A DNA stretch of 64,000 nucleotides from positions 112,220,001 to 112,284,000 of the forward strand of contig NW_026262690.1 of assembly GCF_021869535.1 (NCBI RefSeq), given 5' to 3'. Made by a program: the position numbers and the translations under genes. Below are positions 10,801 to 49,900 of the stretch, piece by piece; position 1 is the first letter of the stretch; each line of letters opens with the position of its first letter. The stretch comes from Mytilus californianus (lineage: Eukaryota). Below the pieces are notes generated by a model that was not told where the DNA came from, did not search any database, and saw nothing but the letters and a program-made list of their open reading frames with translations.

Positions 10801-13800
10801 TCAGAGTCCTACATATATTTTTAATGAAATTAACAAATTTCAAGGCAAGAATGTGATTCGATTGATAGAATTTTCATTTAAATGAAGAAAACTATGTGAT
10901 TTTATCCTATTTTCACCCCAGTTTGCACAAATACAGAATTTAAAAAAAAAGTCAAAAAAATAAACTTATCATCATAAGGGGAGATAATTCATGTAATTTA
11001 ATTTTACGCAGGAATGTACTTAAAAAATATTTATGTCATAGCAAGAAAAAAGTAAACGGTGACCTTATTTCTCTTTTGATTTTCTTAATTCAAACTTGTC
11101 ATAATTTATCTGATAATTCTGTCATTGAGTTTTCTTTCTATATAATAAAGCTGTTTTCCTTGTATGATTCTTAAAACATTTGTCGATTTTTTACAACCTG
11201 TTAAACGTATCTTTATAACAAGCTTGGTGACTTATAATTGTTATCATATTTGAGACAAAGCACGATATAAACTATATTTGGGAAAGAATAAAAAAAAATC
11301 TGTCATTTTCTGTTTAAACCCCATACTGCCTTAATGGAATTGCAGTATCACCATTTGTACGACGGTTGATCAAGAGTACTTCTCATTTAGAATTAAACTT
11401 TCGAACTTTACAAATTGACCAATAATTAAAAATTTGAAGTGTTCAATATTGACTGGGGCCAAGTACTATTTGGTTACAGTTCACACCTGTGCAAACTTTC
11501 AACACCTGTGGGATTATCGAGATAGTGAATATGATAACATATAGATTTATTTAATATGATGAAGCATGCTTTTATAGGTTTTTGTAAACATTGTTACTGA
11601 CGGTAATTCAGACGTCAGTCAGCCATATAACACATTCACACAAATTTTAGACCTGAGAACTAAATGAAATTATTTACGAGTTATATCATATACTCTATTG
11701 TCATGAACACCAAAAAACAAGATCTTTTTAATATTTTTTTTTTGTCTTTTTCTTATATAAATTCTGCTCGAAAGGATTTCATTTTTTTTTCGAATATGAA
11801 GTGATTGAAATATATAGATACGAAATTAATTCGTAAATCTTAATTCATTTTAATGACAATGAGGTGATACTTATTTATTCCATGTATTAAATAAAAATGA
11901 AATAGTTGTATGATGTTCCTATTCAAATGAAAAATAAACAAAAACAAACCATCCAATTGTAAAATAAAAAATCAAATCTGAAAACGATTTCTTTTGGTTC
12001 CATCCATCAATTTTTGGCAAATATCAATCCAATAATTTTTTTTTAATTATTCTGATCATTATCAATATAATAAATATACTCACAAAGGATTACTTTCATT
12101 CATCTGTTTTATGATGTATTGTAATAAATTGGCAATAAATCTTCTTTTTTTAGAAAACGGACAACCTGTAGAATAACCAAAATATGATTTATTTCTTATA
12201 AAATATACGTCAAATGAATGTGTATGTGAAAAGCAGCCTGTACTGAATGGTAGTTTATTGTGAATAGCAGCTTGTTGTGAATGGCAGTTTGTTGTGAATA
12301 GCAGCTTGTTGTGAATAGCAGCTTGTTGTGAATGGTAGTTTGTTGTGAATAGCAGCTTGTTGTGAATGGCAGTTTGTTGTGAATGGCAGTTTGTTGTTAT
12401 ATTTGCAGTTTGACGTGAATTGCAGTAATGTGGGAATTGCAGTTTCTTGTAAACTGCAATTATTGTGAACGGTAGTTATGTGTGAATGGTTGTTTCTTAT
12501 GAATAGTGAATCTTTATCAGTCTGTGTTGCATCACTTCACCCACAACCTATTCCGGTATAGAAGACAATAAGATAAGATAAGATAAGATAAATTGTATTT
12601 CCAATAGAGGACCCATTATAGGCATAGTCAGTACATTGATTTTTTATATCACATAATTGCAATAGACAATACACAAGAAAATAAAAAAAAAAAGAAATAC
12701 AACTGAAAAAAAAAACATGAAATATAAATTGAGTTAATAATACATGTAGTCACGTAAACCAGTATGTTTAGTGTTTATTATGATTGATTGATTGATTGGT
12801 TGATTTCACGGTGTTTAACACCACTTTCAGCACTGATGATGAAGGAAGCCGGAGTGCACGGAGAGACCATATGTAAATATTAAAAAATATTTAGGTACAC
12901 TATATTAAATACCTTTCATTTCTCGCTCTATCTTGATTTCATTACATTTCGGCAACTGCTTTAAGGCAGACGTCCCTCGGATCGGGTCACCTGTTGATTC
13001 TTTAACACACCAGCAATATCCCGAAGAGTTGTGACACTGTGCCTGTGACCAAAGACCAGTGTTTGTACAGGATGGGATAAATGTTCCACCAGTAGGATCT
13101 TGTCTGTTTTGTATCAGGGCAGCCTCCCTCTCTTCTATACAACTCTTTGTTTCTATTTAATACGATAATGTTACATTATAACATACGATTACATAATATT
13201 ATATATCATGTAATTTTTTTGAAATATTCATACATGCAAAAAGCAAAGCTAAATAGGCTAAATCTACGTAAAATAATATTTTCTACGTGGATTTGTTTTA
13301 CTTTTAAATGCCCTATAAGGTCTTGATCAATTCAGATAAACATGTTTATGAATAGACATATTCAAGTTAGGGTACCCACTTCTTGTACCGCTATGATAAT
13401 ACCTTTGAAGTTTAAATCACAATCTAAAGGTTAACTCTCTGAAAAGGTCAATTTTCTCTGGACCCGAGAGTGACCAGGTTATACTGTACTCAAATTTTCC
13501 CACATTGTCCAAATCAAATATAAAAGAATTAAATACATGATTTATTTGCCATAAAAATACTTAACTAAATCATTTTGGGTTGTTATGCATATAAATTATG
13601 TATTTTCTATCTTATGTAATATATCAAAATAACGTTAAGTTATTACTTTATATTCATGCCATATTCCTAAATCAAATTATATACAATATAAATCAACTGT
13701 GTTACAGATGAAAATATTACTTTACTATAGCAAAGACTGCAAGCAAAAGCTCTTGAATGCAAAATATTGCAGTAAAGTTTGTAACAAAACTATATATTTA

Positions 13801-22800: not shown

Positions 22801-25800
22801 GTTAACAAAACCGACAATGCCCTGTATGCAAGACAAAACTGCGAACAAATAGGAGTTACTGTAGTTTCTGTTCTGACAATGACGGAAACATTCCCGCATA
22901 CACATAATCAATAAATTAAAGTGTCTAGTTTCTGTTTAATATAATCAACTTAGAGCATCAACGTGTTGTGTGGGATGTTAAAAACCCCAACAAACTACAT
23001 ATAACTGATACATTTCATTAAAAAGCCAATCACGTTGTAATATACAGACTTGCGGGAAAACCTCACTTTCTTTACTGTGTTATTACAGTTTCTGGTATCT
23101 TTATTTTCGTTCACTCCCCCCATGCAATCATTCAAAGGTCTCTTCCAGTAACAAGAGGATAATTTCTTTTCGACCCTTCCAGTTGACTAGTAACCACTCA
23201 TTTCGGTAATGGGGATATATTTAATGAGGTTCAAACCCAAATAGGTTAAACCTTGTCCAGGTATGGAATACAAACTACCGCTAAGATTTAAGACCATTTA
23301 CATATAAAAATAAGGAGATGTGGTATGATTGCCAATGAGATGGTATATGTATATACAAAATACTCACTGCTGCCTGTTGTCAAGCTTTTTGCTCGCTCAT
23401 ATTCTTTTATAAAAGTTTGCATAAGATTTTTATTGAATTCAGCTCTATCTGATTTTCTGCACGCTGCAAAATAAAACGTTTTGTTCATATGAAAAATATG
23501 AAGAATTAACACATATCATATAGTCGACTTATATTTAAAAGATATAATTGGTGATGTCTGTTTCAAAAAACCTAATAAAGAACAACTAAAATATATGTAC
23601 TAAAATTTTATATAAAATATAGTTTATTTCAAACAAACTTCTGCAGTACTTTGTACTTTTTATGCTTATTCAAATTCAAACATTTCAAATCAAAGGAACC
23701 TTTCCCCCTTTGCACACATGTATGTACATGTAGCTTAGAGGTTACACGTGCAACCGTTTTACTCGAACAGACCGACCTGATATCCTACTCAGCGTCTTTA
23801 ATTTGTGGGACCAAACATAACATATTAAAATAAGGAGATGTGGTATGATTGCCAATGAGACAACTATCTACCCAAGTTCAAATGAAATGGATGTAAGCAA
23901 TTATAGGCTATCGCACGGCCTTCAACAATGAGAAAAACCCATACCGTATAGTCGGCTATAAAAGGCCCCAACATGGAAAATATGAAACAATTCAATTGTG
24001 AAAACTAACGGCCTAATTTAGGAAAAAAACACTATACGAAAAGCAAGTTTGACAGACATGAACCAACGACAACCACTGAACTACAGGCTCCTGACTTTGG
24101 ACAGACACATATAGAATGTGGCGGGGTTAAACATGTTTATAAGCGCTCAACCCTCCCCCTAACCTGGGACAGTGGTGTACAGCAACACATAAGAACAATG
24201 TCCTCTTTTATTCGTACAACAAGAAGCACATGCAATAGAGTTCGTACTATGTCTGACAATATTTGACTAATTTGCAGTCGTACATTGAAATATATTGTTG
24301 CAGGATTTTAAAATCGATCTTTTGCCCTCGCTCGTCATGAATTTTTTCGATGGTTTATCGTAGTGACTGGATATAACGGCTCTTTACATAGCAAAACTAC
24401 ACTTGATATTCAACAGATATGAAACCTATAACAACGGGTACGAGTTTCTCATTAGGATATGAATCAATTTTGGAATACTCACCTTTCTTTTTTCTTGATC
24501 TATCTTTATTTCTAAATGATTTCTTCGTTCTAGATTTGCCTAAAATTAGAATTAAATTATATTGGATTAGTAAAGAACTATAAATGTATATATTTTTAAT
24601 GTGCGTATTGTTATGCGTTTACTTTTCTACATTGGCTAGAGGTATAGGGGGAGGGTTGAGATCTCATAAACATGTTTAACCCCGCCGCATTTTTGCGCCT
24701 GTCCCAAGTCAGGAGCCTCTAGCCTTTGTTAGTCTTGTATTATTTTTAATTTTAGTTTCTTGTGTACAATTTGGAGTTAGTATGGCGTTCATTATCACTG
24801 AACTAGTATATATATTTGTTTAGGGGCCAGCTGAAGGACGCCTCCGGGTGCGGGAATTTCTCGCTGCATTGAAGACCTGTTGGTGACCTTCTGCTGTTGT
24901 CTGTTCTATGGTCGGGTTGTTGTCTCTTTGACACATTCCCCATTTCCATTCTCAATTTTATGTTTTTTTCCATAACATATGATTGTGTTCTCTTAATTTG
25001 TTTTTGTTATACAAAATATCAAAGATGCAACGATTGTTCTTGTTTTTATTACAATTATATATTTACATCTTGGTCAAGTTAAACCAGTTTGAATTTTGTT
25101 CAGAATTAAGAGAAACAAAACAAGTCAAAAAGATATAATTTTGGATTTATAAGGGTCTGCGGCTCTTTTCACAAAAAATCTTAAGAGTAAAAATACTCGT
25201 AAGTCATACACATTTCAGTATAACGTACGATCAATTTTAATCGTAAGATTTTTTGTGAAAAGAGTCGCTGGAGCGGAGGGTCCATCTGTATTCTTTTAAT
25301 TTTTAAGTAATTTTTCTCTATTCTATATTGATTTGCTTAATGTTTGAATTCTCTATTGTTTAGATTTAAGCACTCAAACTATTCTCTTTGCTTTATTTGA
25401 ATGATTTTTTCTTTCTATTCTTTATTTATGTGGTCAATTCGTGCCCATTGTATATGCAAATACATATAATACACGTCTGAAAAGTGTCCAACACCACAAA
25501 AACAACAAAAAGAATATTTAATAATAAATATAAAAATTAATTAGTATTTAGGGTAACAAATGTTCCTGATCAGTATAAGAAGTCTGATGAAAAATGGCAA
25601 CAAAAATTATATTGAAAGTTATTCTGATTGAATTAGTTGATTGTTGTTTAATAATGTCCAGTGTAAAGTAAATGTGTATGTTGTATTTCAAGTGGGTATT
25701 AATCCATTATGGTTAAAGATGCCTTTCGATGCAAAATTTCGCCAAAACATGTACAATTTGCAACAATGTCTTAAACACCATTAGTACCGCTGATATTTAG

Positions 25801-28800
25801 ATTTGTAGTTGGTAATGCTTTAAAGTATACTATATACAATACTTCTGAGATTGACCGTTGAGTGAAACAAATACAGGGGAAATTGGCCTTACCTCTTTAC
25901 ATCGACTTTCCCTTGTAATAAATAACCAGTATTTCTGAATGAAGAATTTTCCACACGAATAAAAAACTTTTACATGAAGGCTTTTTCCTCATGATCAAAT
26001 ACCCTTTTATGAAGGCGTTTTCATCTATAATGAAGAACCTTCCACAAAGGCGTTCCCTATAATGAAGTTCCTTACATAAACGCGTTCCCCCATGTAATGA
26101 AGTACCTTAAACAAAGGCGTTCTCCCTGTAATGAAGTACCTCGCAAGAAGATATTCAACCTATAATGAAGTACCTTATATGAAAGCGTTCCCCTATAATG
26201 AAGTACCTTCCATGAAGGCGTTTTCCCTGTAATGAGGTACCTTACATAAAAACGTTCTCCCTATAATGAAATACCTTGCATGAAAGCGTTCTCCCTGTAA
26301 TGAAGTACCTTACATGAAGACGTTCAACCTATAAGGAAGTACCTTACATGAAAGCGTTCCCCTGTAATGAAGTACCTTCCATGAAGGCATTCTTCCTGTA
26401 ATGACGAACCTTGCTTGAGGGCGTTCCGCCTGTAATGAAGTAACTTACACGAAAACGTTCCCCTGTGATTAAGTACCTCACATGAAGGCTTCCACCTGTA
26501 ATGAAGTACCTTACATGAAGGCGTTCAACCTGTACTAAAGTAGCTTACATGAAAGCGTCCCCCTGTAATGAAGTGCGTTACATGAAGGCATTCCATTTGT
26601 AATGAAGTACCTTACATGAAGACTTCCACCCTGTAATGTAGTTGCTTACTTGAAGACGTTCCCCTGTAATGAAATACCTTACATGAAGACTTCCACCCTG
26701 TAATGAGTTCCTTACTTAAAGACGTTCCCCCTGTAACGAAGTAACTTACTTGAAGGCGTCCCCATGTAATGAAGTACATTACACGAAGGCATACACCTGT
26801 AATGAAGAACATTACTTGAAGGCGTTCCGCTTGTAATAAAGTACCTTACTTGAAGGCGTTCTCCTCTGTAAAGAAGTACCTTATATGAAGACTTTCCCCC
26901 TGTTACATGACGTTCTTTACATGAAGACATTTCTCCTGCAATGAAGTACCTTACATGAGGACTTCCTGTAATGAAGTACCTCACATGAAGACTTTCTCCC
27001 TGTTACATGACGTACTTTACATGGACTTTCCCCCTGTTACATGAAGTATTTTACATGAAGGCTTCCCCCTGTAATGAAATAGCTTACATGAAGACTTTCC
27101 CCCTGTTACATGACGTACTTTTCATGAAGACTGTCCCCTTGTTACATGACGTACTTTACATGAAGGCTTTCCCCATGTTACAAATGTACATGACGTACTT
27201 TACATGAAGACTTTCCCCCTGTTACATGACGTACTTTACATGAAGACATGCCTCCTGTTATGAAGTACCTTACATAAAGACTTTCCCCCTGTTACATGAC
27301 GTTCTTTACATGAAGACATTCCTCCTGTAATGAAGTACCTTACTTGAAGACTTCCTGTAATGAGGTACCTTACATGAAGACTTTCTCCCTGTTACAAAAC
27401 GTACTTTACATGAAGACTTTCCCCATTTTACATGACGTATTTTACATGAAGGCTTTCTCCTGTAATGAAATACCTTACATGAAGACTTTCCCCCTGGCAC
27501 ATGACGTACTTTACATGAAGACTTCCCCCCTGTTACATGACGTACTTTACATGAAGACGTTCCCCCTGTTACATGACGTACTTTACATGAAGACTTTCCC
27601 CCTGTTACATGACGTACTTTACATGAAGACTTTCCCACTGTTACAAATGTACATGACGTGCTTTACATGAAGACTTCCCACTATTAAATGACGTACTTTA
27701 CATGAAGACTTTCCCCCTGTTCTATGACGTACTTTACATGAAGGCTTTCTCCCTGTTACATGACGTACTTTACATGAAGACTTTCCCCCTGTTACATGAC
27801 GTACTTTACAAGAATGCTTCCTCTGTAATAAAGAACATTTTATAAGGCTTTCATTCATGTAATGAATTACCTAACATGAATGATTTTCTCTGGAATGAAG
27901 CACCTTTACATGTAATATGATGGCTTTCTCCTTAAATAAAGCACCTCGCATGAAGGTCTTTTCTAAGTGAAGAGTTCCTTTGCATTTAATTCCCCATGTG
28001 AAGCCTTACTATAAGATATTTTCCCCGTTATGAATTACACTGTACCTTGCATTAAGGATTTCAACTATGATGAAGTTCCTTTACATTAAGGTGTTCCCCT
28101 ATAATGAAGTACCTTCACACGAAGGTGTTCCCCTATAATGAAGTACCTTTACACGAAGGCTTTTTTCCCTGTAATGAAGTACCTTTACATTAATGTGTTC
28201 CCCTATAATGAAGTACCTTTACACGAAGGCTTTTTTCCCTGTAATGAAGTACCAGAAATTGGTTTTCCTTCTTTGGTTACACACCAACAATAATTTGTAG
28301 CTGCATGACACTGAACGTCAACATAAGACCCATCTTTCTTACATTCTGGTATAAAAATCCCAGCTGTTGGCCGCCTGGCTATTTTTTGGGCTTCAGTTCT
28401 TTCTTGCTGACATTTTGTAGAACTTTTAGATCCTGAAAGTAACAGATTCTTTAGCCAAAATGAATTATTTACAAAGAAATAATTTATGCAAAAATAGTCA
28501 ATTTTTATACGATTTTCATCAATTTGATGAATTCAGGTACTCCAGGATCAAAACATTCAATCTGTATAACAATAAGAAGATGTGGTATGATCCACCAAAG
28601 AGATAGCTATCCACCAAAGTTCAAATGAAGTGGAAGTAAGCAATTATATTCAACTATAAGGCCTTCAACAATGAGAAAAACCTGGCTCTTTCTTGTTAAA
28701 TATAATCATTTGCTTTATTTCAGAGTAATTTTCATCGCTTGTCATATATGAAGTACTAGATTGACAATTTATTTCAGTGAAATAGTTTTTGTTTATACAT

Positions 28801-34800: not shown

Positions 34801-37800
34801 AACCACAGCATATCATTAGCAGATAATATGAACCTGCACTGAATTCTTGACAAGGTATCATTTTTGTAAAAAAGAAGGCGATAAAGAAGACAAAATAAGG
34901 ACATATGTTTTCAGTTTATGTAAAGAGAACGAGAGAGATGGAAAAATGAGGACATTTATTCAGTTTATGTAAAAAAGAGAAGGAGAGAAATTTCGACTCA
35001 TAACAGACAACCTTCTGACCCTTCAAAGCGTTGTTACAGGAGTCATGTGACTTGTAATTAAGCGTGGCACTCTCCGTACATGCAACTCTAGATTTAGCTT
35101 CCCTACTACTAGGACTGGACCAGCGGAGGAAACTTCAGCGTGTTGACATGACATTTTAGCTTAAATAAATCGGGCTTTTTAGCGCCAAAGTATAGCCCAT
35201 ATAAGCGCCAGATTTTTAACCCATTTCAGCGAAAAGTGAAATTGTCAATGCCGGTCCTTCTTAGCGACAGATGTTTTTCTTTATAGTAGAATAATAAATT
35301 TACTAGCATCAAAACATCACAATATACAAAATGTCATATCCATAAACATACAGCAATAAACTCAAATGTTTAATTTTAAATTTATGTCCAAGTGAACGTA
35401 CGAAATGGTTTTTTGATATATCCCCTGTACAGTGTACTGTTCGTAAAATTGTGATAGGAACTTTTTCCTAATCTTTATCTTATCCAAATAAGGGTGCAGA
35501 TTTATCGATATATCTAATAGTCTTCGCAAAACGTAAATGACTATAGGTGACGTTAGCCACATTTTGCACATTTGTTTCCTCTGCTTGTTTCAACAAAATT
35601 TATTTCCATGATTATTAGCATTATGCCCCCATTAATAGAATAACTGTTAACGGTTTTAGTATGGCGATTTCTATTCAACCTGGTAAGTCATCGCAAAAAT
35701 GGGCTATTGAAAATACAGGTGAACTTATTAGTCTTGCGCTGAAATGGGCTATAAAGCTTGTGCTAAAATGCACCTTAGTGGTTTTTAATTTTTCACTAAA
35801 ATTTCCTGGAAGTGACAGCGTATTTGTACATCCCGTTCAATCGAACGCTAAGTCAGAGCTATTTTTACTCCCGGACCGCAGAAGTCTAAGATGATATAGA
35901 TAAAAGGATATGAGTGGTATACACTAACACACCATATTACTATAACCCATGCAGTCAACCTTTGAAAAAAGTGTGTGATAATATTTTTCAAAAAGGGGGA
36001 AAATCCGAGAGGAAATAATTCATGCAAAAAGATACAAACAAAAGTCACATCTATTGATTACTTAGCTCGCATTTATATTTGGCAAATGATTGTTTTAATC
36101 AATTATTATTTTCTTAAATCACCTATACATGAGACAAAATATTTAAACTTCACAATTATCATGTTAAAGAATTTACAGCTACATGGACTGCTGTTTAGCT
36201 TTAAGTAAATTTCATATGTTACACTTATTTTAAAGTTTTTACTACTTGATACCAAAAAAATTTTTTGAAAAGAGACCACGAGTCATAATATGCAATTCGT
36301 ATGATTAAAATTGATATTTAAAATTCCAATCGGAGTATCATCTTTTGTCTTACTAAAGTAGAAAATGTAACTAAAATATCCTTATTTGGAGATCATAAGG
36401 AAGATCTGGACATAACAAATTAAAAATCCCAGTAATGATGGTTGCATATTCAGGCGTAACGCGGACAACGGCGACGTGAATGACAACACAAGGCAACAGA
36501 GGTGATCATAGCTTCGCTGGCTGGCGACACAGAAGGGCGCGCCCACACATACATGGGTGGTTCTGCCCCTAAATGAACCGTAAAAAATGGAAATAACATG
36601 TTAAAATATAACTGATTTAAACAGTATACCTCCAACTGTGAATTCATTTTTATTCGTAGAATACAAATTTTCGGGGATTTCGTGGGTGTAGTAGATATAC
36701 TAACTTAAATGTTCACTGAAATACAAATTTTTTATATGCTTGTATATTATAGACTTTGGCAAAACCACGAAAATAAATTTTTAATCCTTCCACCAAAAAT
36801 TGATATCCACGAAAATAATTAAATTCACAGCTGTTCAAAAATAGAATGAGTCAAATGTTAATACAATATACATACCTGAACACTTTCCTTTTTTCTGTAT
36901 GCTGACTTGACGTTTTTCGCAACGTTTGGCTTTCGTGAGATCACATTTAGATGCATATGTTATACCGTCTGACCCACATACGGGTCTTCGTTGTTTATTT
37001 GAACATTTAATTTTACAGTCAGAGTCTCTTAATGCCCTAAATAGTACCTGAAAATATAAAAAAAAACTGTTCTGTTATAAAGACTGATTAGATCTTACAT
37101 CTTATGTCTGTGTCGTACGTATACATCGTGTTCCTCGATTACAAGAACTCTAGCAAAGAAATGAATTTAGAAAAAAAATAACATATACGTCATGTGTACC
37201 GCAAATTTGGCGTCTGGTATTGTTTTTTGTTACATAGACCGAATCGGCTACTAATATGTGTGTTTCTACAAATAAAATTTCTTGACAGCGGTACCACTGA
37301 TATAACTATAGTCCGTTAAATGAATATTCCTTCTGGTTACTATATCAATGATGTAAATTAACGTTTAGGTGATAGCAACACAAAGATGGTTGTTATAAAC
37401 AAATATAAACAAAAATTCGTAAGGGTTCCGCGGAACCCAGTGTCTCGCCTACTTTTGCTGTTAATCGCAGGCTCAACAAATATGAATAAAATATTCCTCT
37501 CTATACTATCTTTTGATTGTAAGTAGCTTCTGTCCAAGATTGGTAAAAATCCTGGATAGTTTATGAATCTAATAAATGTTTTAAAAACTTAAACTGCAGA
37601 CTGTATGTAATGTTAACTGGAAGAAAAACTAAGTCCATTTATAAGTAAAATACGGAAAAAATGGAACAAAATTTTTAAAAATTTCCTTCTAGATACTAGC
37701 TTTTAATCATAAACAAGCTTCTGTCCATGTTTGGTACAAATCCAGGATAGTTTAAGAAAGTTATTAAAATTTGAAAAACTTTAACCACAGAGTGAATGTA

Positions 37801-40800
37801 ATGTTAACTGGCAGAAAAACTAAGTCCATTTATAGGTAAAATACGGAAAAAATGGATTTTTTTTTTTACAAAATTTACTTCTGGATACTATCTTATGATC
37901 ATAAACAAGCTTCTTTCCAAGTTTGGTAGAAATCCAGGATAGTTTAAGAAAGTTATTAAAATTTCAAAAACTTTAACCACAGAGTGAATGTAATGTTTCC
38001 TGGCAGAAAAACTAAGTCCATTTATAAGTAAATTACGGAAAAAATGGAACAAAATTTTTAAAAATTTCCTTCTAGATACTAGCTTTTAATCATAAACAAG
38101 CTTCTGTCCATGTTTGGTACAAATCCAGGATAGTTTAAGAAAGTTATTAAAATTTGAAAAACTTTAACCACAGAGTGAATGTAATGTTAACTGGCAGAAA
38201 AACTAAGTCCATTTATAGGTAAAATACGGAAAAAATGGATTTTTTTTTTTACAAAATTTACTTTTGAATATTATCTTATCATCATAAACAAGCCTCTGTC
38301 CAAGTTTGGTAGAAATCCAGGATAGTTTAAGAAAGTTATTAAAATTTCAAAAACTTTAACCACAGAGTGAATATTTGTGGACGCCGCCGATGACGACAAC
38401 AACGACGACGACGCCGCCGACGACGGAATGTAGGATCGCTATGTCTCGCTTTTTCGACAAAAGTCGAAGGCTCGACAAAAAGTATATGAAAATTTGACGG
38501 GAAACGAAAGTCAATATAACCTTGTTTCTTTTTTGAGAAAACCGGAATTACATTTTTTTCTAAATTTTGTCGTATAATAAAAAGAGCAAGAACATTGGCC
38601 ATATTGTATCTGGTTACATAATTTTTTCAAATTATTATCTATGAGGGGTTGATTGTACGCTGCTTTACTGTTCATTATTGAATTTATGTTGCAAGTTTTT
38701 TCAAAAGATGTAAAAGGTTTTACTACAAGTATCTTATATAAATTTAACATTATCCCTGGTCTTATATAAATTTAACATTTTCTCTTATATAGATTTAACA
38801 TAATCCCTGATCTTATATAAATTTAACATGATCCCTGGTCTTATATAAATTTAAGATTATCCCTGATCTTATATAAATTTAACATTATCCCTGATCTTAT
38901 ATAAATTTAACATTATCCCTGGTCTTATATAAATTTGACATTATCCCTGATCTTATATAAATTTAACATTATCCCTGATCTTAATTAAATTTAACATTAT
39001 CCCTGATCTTATAAAATTTAACATTATCCCTGATCTTATATAAATTTAACATTATCCCTGATCTTATATAATTTAACGTTAACCCTGATCTCATATAAAT
39101 TTAACATTATCCCTGATCTTATATAAATTTAACATTATCCCTGATCTTATATAAATTTAACATTATTCCTGATCTTATTTAAATTTAACATTATCCCTGA
39201 TCTTATATAAATTTAACATTATCCATGGTCTTATATAAATTTAACATTATCCCTGATCTCATATAATTTAACGTTATCCCTGATCTCATATAAATTTAAT
39301 ATTATCCCTGATCTTATATAAATTTAACGTTATCCCTGATCTTATATAAATTTAACATTATCCCTGGTCTTATATAAATTAAACATTATCCCTGATCTCA
39401 TATAAATTTAACATTATCCCTGGTACATGAAAAAGAGGCTCAGGTCATCAGAACACACAAGACAGACATTTAAACCTTTCAATCATTCCATACTACAAAT
39501 ATAAACAACCTATTGCTTTAAGTCACTGTCTGCATGAGAAACGGACCTAAATGGATTAGACCGTTGATTTTCCTGTTTGAATTGTCTTACACTAGTCATT
39601 TTGGGACCCGTTATAGCTTGCTGTTCGGAGTGAGCCAAGGCTCCGTGTTGAAGTGTACACCTTACAATCATTCAATATACCAAATATTTCGTATAATATT
39701 CCAAAAACTTGTGTTGATCAATGGAAAAAAAAGAAGTAGATGAAGGTCAGATGAGCCCTGTCAGACGGACGTGTACACCTTATAATAATTCCATACACAA
39801 AATATAATAGTTGACCTATTGCTTATGGTTTATAACTGATAAAAGAGGGGCGAAAGATACCAAAGGGACATTCAAACTCATAAGTCGAAAATAAATTGAC
39901 AACGCCATGGCTAAAAAAGAAAAAGACAAACAATAGTACACAAAACATAACATAGAAAACTAAAGACTGAGCAACATGAACCCCACCAAAAACTGGGGGT
40001 GATCTCAGGTGCTCCGGAAGGGTACGCAGATGCTGCTCCACAGGTGGCACCCGTCGTGATAAACGGACTTGACCACGAAATTTAATTGATCACCAATCCA
40101 TTAAACAGGTCAACCAAAAAAAAAGGAGCTATAAACTGGAGCATATACTGATTGGCGCCGCCTTCAAACATGTTTAATCCCGCCCCCTTCTCTATGTGTC
40201 TATTTCAAGTGAAGAGTGTGTAGTACGTTGACTGTCGTTGGTTCATGTCTGTCATATTTGTTATTCGTTAATTGTTTTGTTATAAATTAGGCCTTAGTTT
40301 TCTCAATAGAATTGTTTCATACTTTTCATGTCGGGACCTTTTATAGCCGACACTATACGGGATGGGTTTTTCTCATCGTTGAAGACCGTACGGTGCCTAT
40401 AATTGCTTACATCCACTTCATATGAACATTTACATATAGAATAGAGCTGTCAAAAAGTATGTTCAAGTACATACACTCCTTCTTATCAAGCACATGAGTC
40501 TATGGGACAAAGATATAATTCCAGATTTCAAAACTTTAACTATCTGACGGGTGGGTTAACGAAGTACAAATTACATGACGTAATTTTACATCAGACGATT
40601 TGGAACTGTTTGTTAAAACATGCATTTTATTGTGAATAATATCAAATTATATCCTATAATACTTAGTTAATCAAATGCACTTTAACTTGCTTCATAGATA
40701 GATACCTAGTGAGCACTGCCTTTGTAAACAACTGTTAAAACATCGGGTGTTCTGCAACGCAAATCTTAGACACCGTATATCTATGTCGTAAAACCATTAT

Positions 40801-43905: not shown

Positions 43906-46900
43906 TTTTCCAAAAAAGCTGGAAAAACTGTGAGTAAAAACCACACAAAACTAAGTTTATCTTTTTATTTTTGTAACAAATGTAAGTATAAAGGTATCTC
44001 GAGTAGGTAAAAAAACTATGCAATGTAGTCCTTCTTTAGATAACCTCCTAGTGAAGAAATGTCAAACTTGACATGTTAAGATAACAATCGTATGATATCC
44101 TATCATTACTGTAAGTGACTTTACGTTTTGTTTTTCTGTATGTTTTAGTCCAAATATATGACTAAAATTCTTACCATGTGAAGGGGTGGACCCAGCAACT
44201 TTTGAAAATGTGGTAGACTGATAAATCTTTATCAAAACGAAATATAGCAGGTATCAAGCCAGGGGACAGCACTCGTCAGTCTAGAAATGTGGGAGTACTA
44301 CAATGATATCCTTGGGAAATAACTATCAAGTCTTAATTTTGTTGAACTTTTTACGTATTTTCTTTTAAGTAATAAAATAGAAACTAGGTGTACTACGATC
44401 GAAACTTCTCCCTTTAAATCGCATTTAAAACTACATTAATCAGTCTTCCAATACCAGTTATATAATAGAGGACGACAAGTTGAAAATTACATGTATACAA
44501 ATGTAAAAACTAGAGAAGATACGAAGGGAAAATAAAAAAAAAAAACATCAGTCAAACACTATGACCAATAGGAAAGGACTACAAGAAAGACAGCAGTCCA
44601 TAAAACACAGCACAAAAAAAACTAAAGATGAAACAACACGAAGTCCACAAAAAGCCTGGGGGAAAGGGATCTGTAATCCGGAAGGATAAGCAGTTCTCCG
44701 GAAGGATAAGCAGTGCTCCGGAAGGGTAAGCAGTGCTCCGGAAGGATTAACAGTGCTCCGGAAGGGTAAGCAGTGCTCCGGAAGGGTACGCAGTGCTCCG
44801 GAAGGATTAGCAGTGCTCAGGAAGGATTAACAGTGCTCCGGAAGGATAATCAGTGCTCCGGAAGGGTAAGCAATGCTCCGGAAGGGTAATCAGTGCTCCG
44901 GAAGGATAAGCAGTTCTCCGGAAGGATTAGCAGTGCTCCGGAAGGATAAGCAGTTCTCTGGAAGTATAAGGAGTTCTCCGGAAGGATAAGCAGTGCTCCG
45001 GAAGGATTAGCAGTGCTCCGGAAGGGTAAGCAGTGTTCCGGAGGATAAGCAGTGCTCCGTAAGGGTGCTTCGAAAGGGTAAGCAGTTCCTGCTCTACCAA
45101 TAGAAGAATGTTTGATTCAGAATGCGAATTACACATTCATGAATACTAAATTGAAATCCATTTACTGATAGTACACATATGATACTGAATTTGAGTATAA
45201 GGAGGTTTCCGGAAATGTATGAATCAGGCAGCAATCCAGCAATACAAAAAAAAAAAAACAGAGAGAGAGAGAGAGCTTTGATGCGATGTCGTCCACCTGG
45301 ATTTGCAGGGTATATTAATAAATACGCAGTTATATCTGCTTGAAAATTTGGAAGTCATGCAAATCCAATGCACTGTTGAGAGCATGTAATGCTCTCAAAA
45401 TCTTTTTAACAACTATTGATACCTAAAACATCCTTATATGTTCAACATGCCTACAATGCCAGTTGTATTCCCAATGTCCAGACTATTCGATCACCACCAT
45501 CCATACACTTCAGGGTTGCTATATTGTATGATTGTCTCTATACCTAAATATGCAAGGCAAATGTGTGCCACTAGACGTTAAAATCATATAAAATTACCAC
45601 AGCAATCACTAAGTGTTTTTAATAAGATTTATAATTACTAGTAACATATTACACATTTGTTGCAAATATGATATAGAAATAAAATAATAATTAACTAGGC
45701 TATGGATATAACCACAAAACTGAATAAAAGTTTAAACTAAGAATAATCTACATAAAAAACATATGAAGATACACAACGGAAACCGAACATAGAATAAAAG
45801 TAACAACTATTTCCATGTATACGATTTTCTATTTATACATTGGCGAAAACCAGTTAGGCCAGGTTTTTCTTCTGTTTTTGTTTCGTATTATTTGTTTTAC
45901 TTGTTTTACCGTTGCTCTTTAGTAGTTATGAGAGTGTGGAAGGGGGTTTACAGAATAGAAAATAATGGGCAAAAAATATAAGGAATAGAGAAAAATGGAC
46001 CAAAAAAATAAAGAAGAGAGAGTAATGGGCAAATAGTATATAGAGTAGAGAATAATGGCCTGAAAAATTAATGAATACAGAAATGATGACCCCCCACCCA
46101 GACCCTCAGTTATAAACATTTTTTTTTTTTTCATTTTTTGTATTAAAAAAGGTAAATTACACTACAGGGAGGTAACTCTGTAAAAATCATCTGAACGTTT
46201 TAATCACGTTCTATTGTTAAGGAAATATTAAGCTTCTCAACGATCTAAATTAGTGATTGTCAAACTGCTATATATCCAATGAAATTTTTCCGATAAAGTT
46301 TGTGGTTCAAGTTTTTGAAATTCTAATTTTTTTTCAAAGGGTCAAAGTAAATATTTTGTAAAAATTTTATGAAAATTAAACGAGCCAAATTAATTTTAGT
46401 CAAGATGTTTGGTACCACCTTAAATTTGCAAGCCTTTAAACTGACTGTATTACTAATTTCAAACTCCACAGCTTCAATAAACTGGACTTTATATGTTTTG
46501 GACATGTAAGTTCTGAATGTCTATTCAATAAAAATAAAAGAAAAACTAAAATGAAAAGTTATAACTTGCTCCAAGTGAGACATTTAAGCGCTAATTTTAT
46601 TATTTTCCATTTGCTCCTTCGGATAGGAAAAAAAAATGGGGAACACTTTAATATAACATTTCAAGTAAAATTTTCACTAATGTTGTTATACTCTGTAGTA
46701 TTGCTGTGAACCAAAATGGCGGTAGAAAAACCCCGACACCTTGAATCTTCTGTACTAGTAAGACTCGAGTGTAAGAGAACAACCAGTCATGTTGAAGAGG
46801 ACAAGATAATTTCTTTTCGAAAATTCGAAATTCGATCAATTGATTGATTGATTGATTGTTTCTTGCATCCAGTGTCAACATAACTAGAAAGTCGTAAAAT

Positions 46901-49900
46901 ATTATATTTAAAACATGTAAATAAAATTGTGTATTTTTATGCAATTTTTAAAGGTTCTAAGTGCGTCGAATTTTGGAGTCACATAACTCAATGCTTTCGA
47001 ACCCCTTTAATAAGTAGAAAAACTGTCATTCTTCTAAATCGGACAACAGAAAACATTTACGGGGCTAATCCTTTACTTCTTTGACTAAAACAGAAACAAA
47101 AAAGTTCTACTGAATTTCTAAAAACTGAATGCAAGTAAAACGTAACATTAAGTTAAATTTTCAGACATAAGATATTAGAATTTCACTGATGATATGTTAC
47201 ATTCAAGGCTAACTAATCAGAAACATTCGTGCTTAAACTTTAATGATCTGTCTTGGGGTATTGTTGTGTTTTATACATCAAGCTTTGTAGAAGAACCAGG
47301 TAACACAGGTGTGGAAACCAGTCATCACAGGTGTTGTTTTATATCAGAAACGAGACTGTAATAAATTAAATTCACAGTATCTTTAAAACTATATATCTAT
47401 CAAAATTGTTTTCAACTCGGCTGTTGGATGTCATAAAGAGAGTACAAAGGCATTTTGATCAGGATGTCTGCACAGTACACACCTGTACAAACAAAATACA
47501 TATTATCTAAAAGCATGTCAAATTCCGTCAGTTCTGGATCAATTCAGTCGCATATGTGAAAAATATACATGGAGAACGTTGACATGTGTCCTTGTGCACT
47601 AAGCTTATAGTTGCTTATTTACATCCACTTCATTTAAACTCTGGTGAATAGTTGTCTCATTGGCAATCATACCACATCTCCTTATTTTTATATTAGGTAA
47701 ATGTCTTGCGCTATCCTTTTTTCATGCAATACAAGTCTCCGATTTAACCAACCCCAAGTTTAGGTTTATTGGGTTAGAAATATCGGTTCGTCTTGCTTTG
47801 ATCTTAGATGTTTTTGATTAATATAAATGAGAACAGAGGAAACTCTTGTCTGAGTGTAAGCATAATTACGCAACCTAAGCGGCACCTCCTCTGTTTTTTT
47901 TCTTTTGTCTCTCTTTTGTTGACTAATGTTTTTTTTTTATTGGCCATAACTTATCTTCCCACTTTTTTTTTATAAAATTTCTGGTTGGGTTTTTGCATAA
48001 ATAATTCAAATGCTCCTTAGGAAAGCGATCTTTTAAAGACCAGCTACAAAATTTTGGATCATGTTTATTATGTAGTAAAGGCAACACGAGCCATAACTAA
48101 AATTGCTTTATTTCACTGATGAATGTTTTTATAATCTTACTCAATGCTGTAACATTTCGCACTAGACGTTTCAGACCTTGCTAATGATTGTCATGTCTTA
48201 TCTAGACCCTTAAACATTTACCGCTTAACGTTTTCAAACCCTGATTTGGATTACAAAAAATTCCACTGAACTAGTTCATCCCCAAACTTAAGATGATAAA
48301 TACTAGCAATCTGTAGTTTTCCAATCCATTTTAAAATTATCCAATAGTCTAGGGACTAAAACATTTGTTTTTGTTTTTAATTTACCTTCTTATTAAAGAG
48401 GTTTTAAAGTGCACATACACTCAGAAGAAATAGATATAAGAAGATGTGGTATGAGTGCCAATGAGACAACTCTCCATCCAAGTCAAAATTTATAAAAGTA
48501 AACCATTATAGGTCACAGTACGGTCTTCAACACGGAGCCTTGGCTCACACCGAACAGTAAGCTATAAAGGGCCCCAAAAGATTACTAGTGTAAAACCATT
48601 CAAACGGGAAAACAAACGGTCTAATCTATATAAAAAACGAGAAACGAGAAACACTTATGAACCACATCAACAAACGACAACTACTGAACATCAGATTCCT
48701 GACGTATATTTAGATGTTCAATATGTTTACATTATAAAACACTGGCTGAAAACGATAAAAATGTAATTGACTTTGTTTGTCTGAGCAATCGTTTTCCACC
48801 ACTATGCCTTTTAACGACTGCCAGAACAATTTTGCCTCAATCTTGCCTTAACGATTGCCTAAGCTATTTTGCCTCTATCTTGCCTTGATGTTTGATCAAT
48901 CGTTACTATTAATACCGGGCACGGGCAATGACAGTTTCTCTTAGTCTCAACACCTTGCTATTTTGCCTCTATCTTGTCTTGATCGAATGTTTGATCAATC
49001 GTTACTACTAATACCGGGCATGAACAAATGATAGTTTCTCTTAGTTTCAACGCCTTGCTATTTTGCCTCTATCTTGTCTTGATCGAATGTTTGATCAATT
49101 GTTACTATTAATACCGTGCACGAACCATGACAGTTTCTCTTAGTCTCAACACCTTGCTATTTTGCCTCTATCTTGTCTTGATCGAATGTTTGATCAATCG
49201 TTACTATTAATGCCGGGCACGGGCAATGACAGTTTCTCTTAGTCTCAACACCTTGCTATTTTGCCTCTATCTTGTCTTGATCGAATGTTTGATCAATCGT
49301 TACTAATAATACCGGGCATGAACAAATGATAGTTTCTCTAAGTTTCAACACCTTGCTTTTTTGCCTCTATCTTGTCTTGATCGAATGTTTGATCAATCGT
49401 TACTATTAATACCGTGCACGAACCATGACAGTTTCTCTTAGTTTCATTACTTGCGATTTGTTGCATATCTTGCCTTGATGGAATGTTTAATCAATCGTTA
49501 CTCTGCCTTTCACGAACTATGACAGTTTCTCCTTAAGGATATATAATGTATTTTTAAAGTGGCATTCAATAAGAATAATTAGTACATGTTGGGTAATATT
49601 GGCTGCTGATTCAGAAGCAACAAGCAATGAAAGTCCAATTGTTGTTCACTTTTGACATGTTATTGTTTTTCTTATGATTGCACCGAATTCAATACCTTTA
49701 CTCAATATTTTCCCTTAAAAAAATAGCCCAGACAAGGGTACATGCAGTACAGTTGACAGTTTTAATGGTATGAAATTAAATATCTGGAAATTTGAGACAT
49801 CTGTAAGACCGAAATAAAACCTGTCAAACTTGTGTAGATTTTTCTTACACAATAATGATATTTGGAGTTTGCATGCGATTTATAAACTTCACCTATTATG

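Follow-up and report, generated by a model that had tools for sequence, protein, structure and literature searches.

A 2.3-kb tandem array of 34-36-nt units was found in a SMOC-type matrix-protein gene of the mussel Mytilus californianus, within the stretch of 64,000 nt that was analyzed (the window). The array begins 36 nt inside the TY1 (thyroglobulin type-1) exon, crosses the splice donor of that exon and occupies 62 % of the following intron. At a probability of roughly 0.85, it is considered to be a boundary-spanning ("mirage") minisatellite that arose from the ancestral end of the exon and whose repeated donor sequences are silent pseudo-donors, most likely without function.

Host gene and exon structure

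The gene that hosts the minisatellite lies on the minus strand and is of the SMOC/Pentagone type, as judged from sequence comparison. SMOC and Pentagone proteins carry Kazal/follistatin-like, TY, TY and SPARC-type EF-hand calcium-binding domains, in that order. The same order was recovered at the host locus by exon-wise tblastn with the protein P0028 (XP_076100640.1, a Mytilus protein named SMOC1-like isoform X4 by its source) together with Pfam, each exon being compared separately and the exons being left unjoined. The main exons across the window were 80-100 % identical to P0028, the short Lys/Arg-rich exon 77 % and the last exon 76 %, and TY and SPARC_Ca_bdg were found by Pfam on the exons tested.

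The TY1 exon of SMOC (28217-28441, minus strand) was identified by Pfam (PF00086, E 2.5e-22, profile positions 1-67 of 67, a complete domain), by tblastn (97 % identity to residues 89-164 of P0028) and by stranded RNA reads. The Pfam TY model stops at the final Cys of the exon (...GTSLQGKKPSCK). The exon itself stops at 28217, in phase 1, with a single G behind ...GTSLQGKKPSCK. Its authentic 5' splice site reads AAG|GTACTT, lies at 28211-28219 on the minus strand (GT at 28216-28215) and was placed using the P0028 junction and a drop in RNA depth at 28217. The exon junction deduced from P0028 reads K|G-KSRT, and the congener protein has the same TY1 end and is spliced from the authentic donor. 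The intron after the TY1 exon is 3,677 nt long and leads to an exon of 57 nt (24483-24539, minus strand) coding for (G)KSRTKKSFRNKDRSRKKK, which was located by tblastn of P0028 and by reading of the sequence. The non-repeated remainder of the intron, with its acceptor ...ttttag, was assigned by sequence reading to 24540-25892 on the minus strand.

Three further observations were made in this gene. A G+C-richer stretch at 24630-24930 (minus strand view), in the non-repeated part of the intron, resembles a mobile-element fragment. The intron just upstream of the TY1 exon contains a very high-copy repeat at 28546-28690, with summed DNA contig depths of 10^5-10^6 and RNA reads on both strands, which is probably a MITE- or SINE-like element. 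A second SMOC exon, at about 17212 (minus strand), has the same weak donor 9-mer AAG|GTACTT with no array after it.

Anatomy of the array

A single array at 26009-28253 was reported by TRF with periods of 34, 36, 67, 70 and 100 and scores of 1149-1335, the periods of 34 and 36 corresponding to 46-54 copies. Wrap-around alignment against the last 36 nt of the exon split the interval 28252-25893 into 68 units, one exonic and 67 intronic, in agreement with the roughly 65 units estimated in the original prediction from the letters of the sequence. That prediction had also placed the start of the array at the donor, with the exon end serving as a unit, and both the TRF array and a perfect recurrence of the exonic unit at 28182-28147 bear this out.

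The exonic unit, which is the first unit of the array, comprises the last 36 nt of the TY1 exon (28217-28252, minus strand), codes for GTSLQGKKPSCK and starts with a donor-like CTG|GTACTT. Next to it lies a proximal block of four units of 34, 36, 34 and 34 nt (28079-28216, minus strand), delimited by segmentation and exact-copy comparison, in which three exact pseudo-donors stand at +34, +70 and +104 nt from the true donor. Exon end, donor and 22 nt of intron also recur unchanged within the proximal block: the 59 nt at 28125-28183 match those at 28195-28253 without a difference, as had been noted before, and the identity stops at both edges. A degenerate zone of about eight eroded units follows at 27805-28078 (minus strand, by segmentation), the consensus of which matches the exon unit at 33/36 positions.

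The remaining zones, also on the minus strand, were delimited by TRF and segmentation. In the zone at 26980-27804 a 36-nt variant prevails, its unit junctions reading AAA|GTACGT; units of 30-34 nt are interspersed, and three units are identical. All 14 copies of AAA|GTACGT lie between 27015 and 27804, which matches the earlier description of a variant dominating about 27000-27810. The zone at 26039-26979 consists of a 33-35-nt variant with AAG|GTACTT at the unit junction, and an eroded distal tail of about four units, recognized by segmentation, occupies 25893-26038.

The array resembles the exon far more closely than expected by chance, as 28 positions of the 34-nt consensus agree with the exon unit and none of 20,000 shuffles exceeded 20. 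A decay of the units with distance from the exon, as originally proposed, does not describe the array well, given that its decay is not steady: the degenerate zone at 28078-27805 lies near the exon and its units match the exon unit at 20-27/36, whereas the far 34-nt units still match at 25-30/36. Identity between units declines gradually as they lie further apart: it is 0.79 for neighbours and 0.69 at a distance of 60 units. Unit relationships were assessed by block consensus sequences and by identity by lag, as units of 36 nt hold too few informative sites for a tree.

Two other features of the array were considered and set aside. The distal flank was compared with the part of the exon upstream of the unit (AAAGA..CCAATTTC), and the resemblance was attributed to chance, a local alignment score of 20 being reached by 156/2,000 shuffles and by control intron pieces. 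Open reading frames on the minus strand at 27306-27638 (110 aa), 27619-27858 (79 aa) and 26712-26984 (90 aa) are all GKSSCKVRHVTG-type repeats, one of them giving a weak Pfam TIG match (E 8e-5) in which no single stretch passes alone. A 12-codon period free of stops accounts for long reading frames through the 36-nt variant, and these are thus not evidence of a gene.

Splice signals, reads and length variation

Each donor site was given a consensus score (agreement with CAG|GTAAGT) and a modelled duplex energy with the U1 5' end, the sequence of which is established. The true donor AAG|GTACTT matches the consensus at 6/9 positions, has a U1 duplex of -5.6 kcal/mol, ranks among the weaker donors of the SMOC gene and has 16 further exact copies in the intron. 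The AAA|GTACGT variant (14 copies in the intron) also scores 6/9 and has a modelled duplex of -3.0 kcal/mol, and CAT|GTAAGG (8 copies) scores 7/9 with -4.9 kcal/mol. The suggestion that AAA|GTACGT suits U1 better than the true site was accordingly not upheld: the variant gains G at +5 and loses G at -1, leaving the consensus score equal and the modelled duplex weaker (-3.0 against -5.6 kcal/mol). In the same model, the array contains 30 GT sites whose pairing with U1 equals or surpasses that of the true donor, compared with two in the other 1,386 nt of the intron. Pyrimidines make up about 10/20 positions upstream of the CAG of the units, against 11-12/20 at real acceptors of the AT-rich SMOC gene. 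Beyond the TY1 exon, the reading frame continues with GTSL and is closed by a stop after these four codons of intron, so that any transcript spliced at a pseudo-donor would carry a premature stop.

The donor-like CTG|GTACTT inside the exon (28252, minus strand), 36 nt upstream of the true donor, has a consensus score of 6/9, and splicing there would shorten the protein in frame by precisely the 12 residues GTSLQGKKPSCK. No sign of it as the main site was seen in the RNA depth over 28227-28255.

Reads were mapped to 27850-28700 only, with the array body and the acceptor exon lying outside this interval, and about 6 % of one RNA run was used. Stranded raw RNA reads of the same organism label (X21) covered the TY1 exon at a depth of about 4-14, on one strand only. 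RNA depth ends at the authentic donor, where the congener protein also joins, at a depth of about 10 and with no exon-exon joint visible. Across the mapped interval, the same reads gave a depth of 0 in every bin from 28197 downwards, that is, over the nearest pseudo-donors, so that neither read-through nor use of these sites was seen at an exon depth of about 10; transcripts spliced at pseudo-donors may be under-counted, because nonsense-mediated decay would remove them. One contig from an RNA library (X15, depth 2.1) runs from the exon to 28200, 17 nt beyond the donor, and could represent pre-mRNA, DNA in the library or a transcript from a downstream donor.

A DNA contig from another individual of the same organism label (X3) joins about 28058 to 28163, with reads spanning the new junction, and lacks 104 nt. 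The missing length equals 34+34+36, or three units, and the gap is in register, as seen in a single short-read contig at a depth of 5.6. This in-register loss of three units, a classic sign of a VNTR allele, means that the array is variable in length, and the earlier guess of a variable number of tandem repeats (VNTR) is supported by this shorter allele. DNA contigs with a second organism label (X8) align to 27850-28125 at about 92 % identity and to 28224-28591 at 98.6 %, indicating that the proximal part of the array is common to a close relative. Over 28140-28255, the summed depth for the second organism label is 2-3x, a value unsuitable as a copy number.

A functional array is the explanation that competes best with a silent minisatellite, and it is judged unlikely. 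The array would then modulate splicing: its predicted U1-binding sites, about 30 in number, would adjust which donor is chosen, how the intron is removed or how much transcript is made, and length variants would alter SMOC expression. The 30 sites whose modelled U1 pairing is no weaker than that of the true donor, the difference in length between individuals and the 17-nt overrun of the RNA-library contig are compatible with such a role, as is the use of the two nearest pseudo-sites in human IFI6 and CBS (PMC1557585). Against it, the nearest pseudo-donors are without RNA reads at a depth of about 10, the annotated congener protein uses the authentic donor, and pseudo-sites in human F7, whether identical or improved, fail to compete with the first donor (PMC1557585). 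Units about 79 % alike within eroded edges are the pattern expected of neutral turnover, and an outgroup bivalve manages without the array. The original prediction of a decoy splice-site array that could modulate splicing holds as a description, with 16 further exact donor 9-mers in the intron; as to modulation, the reads over 27850-28700 revealed neither use of the nearest decoys nor an effect on splicing. The array is most likely a length-variable (VNTR) stretch of intron that has no function.

Origin and relation to known minisatellites

The array unit was found nowhere else in the 1.65-Gb genome by two DNA searches and two pattern searches (one per variant, with 2 mismatches allowed). These gave 7, 7, 14 and 12 matches, all within the array, and reversed control patterns gave 0. 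The four whole-genome searches ruled out an origin from a dispersed satellite or transposon, and the occurrence of the same satellite at many unrelated loci, named beforehand as an observation that would overturn the exon-born array, was not seen.

In the last 12 residues of the exon, comparison of 12 SMOC TY1 domains retrieved by protein search showed no variation at S68, P74 and C76 and almost none at G66. In other bivalves, short read-through fragments (P0131, P0138) have TY1 ending at the same phase and then enter introns with unrelated starts, and in P0119 TY1 closes with the same conserved ...PSCK. Metagenome contigs of an outgroup bivalve (L035-L043) encode a TY1 that is 88 % identical to P0028 and 84 % to the window exon, the exons being about 81-82 % identical at the DNA level. 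The last 12 residues of the outgroup exon are GTSLQGKKPSCK, as in Mytilus, the six nucleotide differences being silent, and the outgroup intron starts G|GTACAGAATT... without a repeat. TRF and blastn detected no array in the orthologous intron of the outgroup on the 6.9-kb contig L040 (6,909 nt), which carries TY1 and two later exons. Orthologous TY1 exons therefore do not end in unrelated sequence, the other outcome that would have spoken against the original prediction: they share the peptide and the phase. Since the exon-end peptide is conserved in orthologues and the outgroup lacks the array, these comparisons show that the TY1 exon end is ancestral and that the array was derived from it, as first proposed.

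The SMOC segment on L040 is more compact than that of the window, with 4.1 kb against 7.2 kb from TY1 to the first EF-hand exon, and the short Lys/Arg-rich exon was not located in it. A word-based protein search with the exon for congener contigs returned the outgroup cluster P0056 alone. Two pattern scans of metagenome contigs for the array yielded either no match or chance matches of 20 nt, in unrelated contigs of which three are GC-rich.

The reverse order, in which a pre-existing intronic or dispersed satellite converted the exon and rewrote its end, is very improbable. The perfect identity over 59 nt is also compatible with a recent conversion in either direction, but the exon-end peptide is conserved in SMOC across bivalves and beyond, is identical in the array-free outgroup, and belongs to a unit that is absent elsewhere in the genome. 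Least probable of all is that the array or its exact duplicate was made by repeat mis-assembly, for although tandem repeats are error-prone in assembly and the window is the sole full-length copy read, across 27850-28253 independent contigs from another individual and from the second organism label contain the proximal units and show differences in register only.

The derivation of the array from the exon may have proceeded in several stages. G|GTAC occurs twice at a spacing of 36 nt, once where GGT-ACT encodes the conserved Gly-Thr and once at the donor, and slippage or unequal exchange between these two motifs would have produced the first duplication. The exon reads GGT-ACT in the window and GGC-ACT in the outgroup; the GGTAC motif of the exon is thus Mytilus-specific, and may predate or postdate the first duplication. 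Further rounds of unequal exchange would have expanded the array to about 67 units, given rise to the 34-nt and 36-nt subfamilies and left the array edges eroded. The intronic sequence that perfectly matches the present-day exon end would have come later, from a 70-nt duplication or a conversion. The serine codon is TCA in 52/67 intronic units, which is the state of the outgroup exon, and TCG in the present exon and its perfect copy. The TCA majority hints that part of the units form an older layer, consistent with an early amplification and, more recently, the 70-nt duplication or conversion; alternatively, TCA in most units could reflect CpG decay of TCG and not the older state of the exon. 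Splicing would take the first donor, the one adjoining the exon, and the pseudo-donors would stay silent, by analogy with the human F7 experiment. Any use of a pseudo-donor would include the stop after GTSL, and nonsense-mediated decay would probably clear such transcripts.

Elements of this kind have already been described, in human F7, IFI6 and CBS and as amphioxus mirages, and the mussel case differs in degree. Human genes in which the first monomer lies across an exon-intron boundary include IFI6/6-16, CBS, LMNB2, PDGF and F7 (PMC1557585). The VNTR of human F7 intron 7 is a 37-bp minisatellite with its first monomer across the exon 7 / IVS7 boundary (Borensztajn et al. 2006, PMC1557585), and experiments showed that its first donor wins and that identical or improved pseudo-sites do not compete (PMC1557585). 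The unit lengths are similar (37 bp against 34-36 nt), the first unit crosses the boundary in both genes, identical pseudo-donors follow the authentic donor and array length varies; the pseudo-donors are silent in F7, and the nearest ones are without reads in the mussel. The exonic share of the F7 unit is just 4 bp and the copies number about 5-8, whereas in the mussel a whole 36-nt coding unit is repeated in about 67 units that form several diverged subfamilies in a bivalve host, with pseudo-sites that are putative.

The minisatellite in IFI6 (6-16) intron 2 (Turri et al. 1995) has 25 pseudo-sites and the VNTR in CBS intron 13 has 15-20 repeats, as summarized in PMC1557585, so that, as in the mussel array, a donor site is repeated many times. 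According to the same summary, the two nearest pseudo-donors of these human genes are used constitutively and give protein variants, in contrast to the mussel, in which the nearest pseudo-donors are without reads and their use would lead to a stop.

Tandem repeats across exon-intron boundaries, termed mirages, were described from the amphioxus Adh3 and globin genes in PMC3087553 and the work it cites, with length instability, homogenization inside the array and eroded borders (PMC3087553). The mussel array shares the following attributes of a mirage: units are arranged head to tail and fall within about 10-160 bp (TRF and segmentation), the first monomer crosses the exon-intron boundary and the donor 9-mer recurs 16 times in the intron, the exon part is original and the array is restricted to one locus, and length differs by whole units (in one contig, at a depth of 5.6). 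Both are invertebrate minisatellites composed of an exon end and a splice signal, which vary in length between haplotypes and are homogenized inside with eroded edges. Normal splicing is undisturbed in mirages; in the mussel RNA, the nearest pseudo-donors are without reads at a depth of about 10. The amphioxus mirages contain few units, of 10-160 bp (BflGb6 has 3-6), and acceptor boundaries are among those spanned, whereas the mussel array is much longer and lies at a donor.

The novelty of the mussel array is one of degree, residing in the repetition of a whole coding unit of a conserved domain end, in about 67 units in diverged subfamilies and in a bivalve host. The array is unusually large and legible, its apparent older layer of units and its recent exact copy together revealing the direction and the stages of minisatellite birth. 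Bivalves are suggested as a natural system in which to study the choice of the first among many identical donors by the spliceosome outside mammals, and also why tandem duplication often begins at splice junctions. SMOC biology is unchanged by the array on its own. It is doubtful that mussel genomes produce donor-anchored minisatellites systematically and that long arrays act on splicing kinetics or transcript yield. If production were systematic, mutation at the splice junction itself would be the likely cause, for example slippage where GGTA-type microhomology is present, or breakage associated with transcription and splicing. Combined with an effect on splicing by the array and its roughly 30 predicted U1-pairing sites, VNTR alleles would then alter the expression of a matrix gene connected with BMP signalling.

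Five other tandem arrays were recorded in the window, at 12225-12504, 37503-38372, 38731-39422, 44677-45064 and 48863-49502. None begins at a splice donor on the exon map; four of the five sit in SMOC introns, and their units measure 17/34, 191/383, 28, 20 and 99 nt, respectively.
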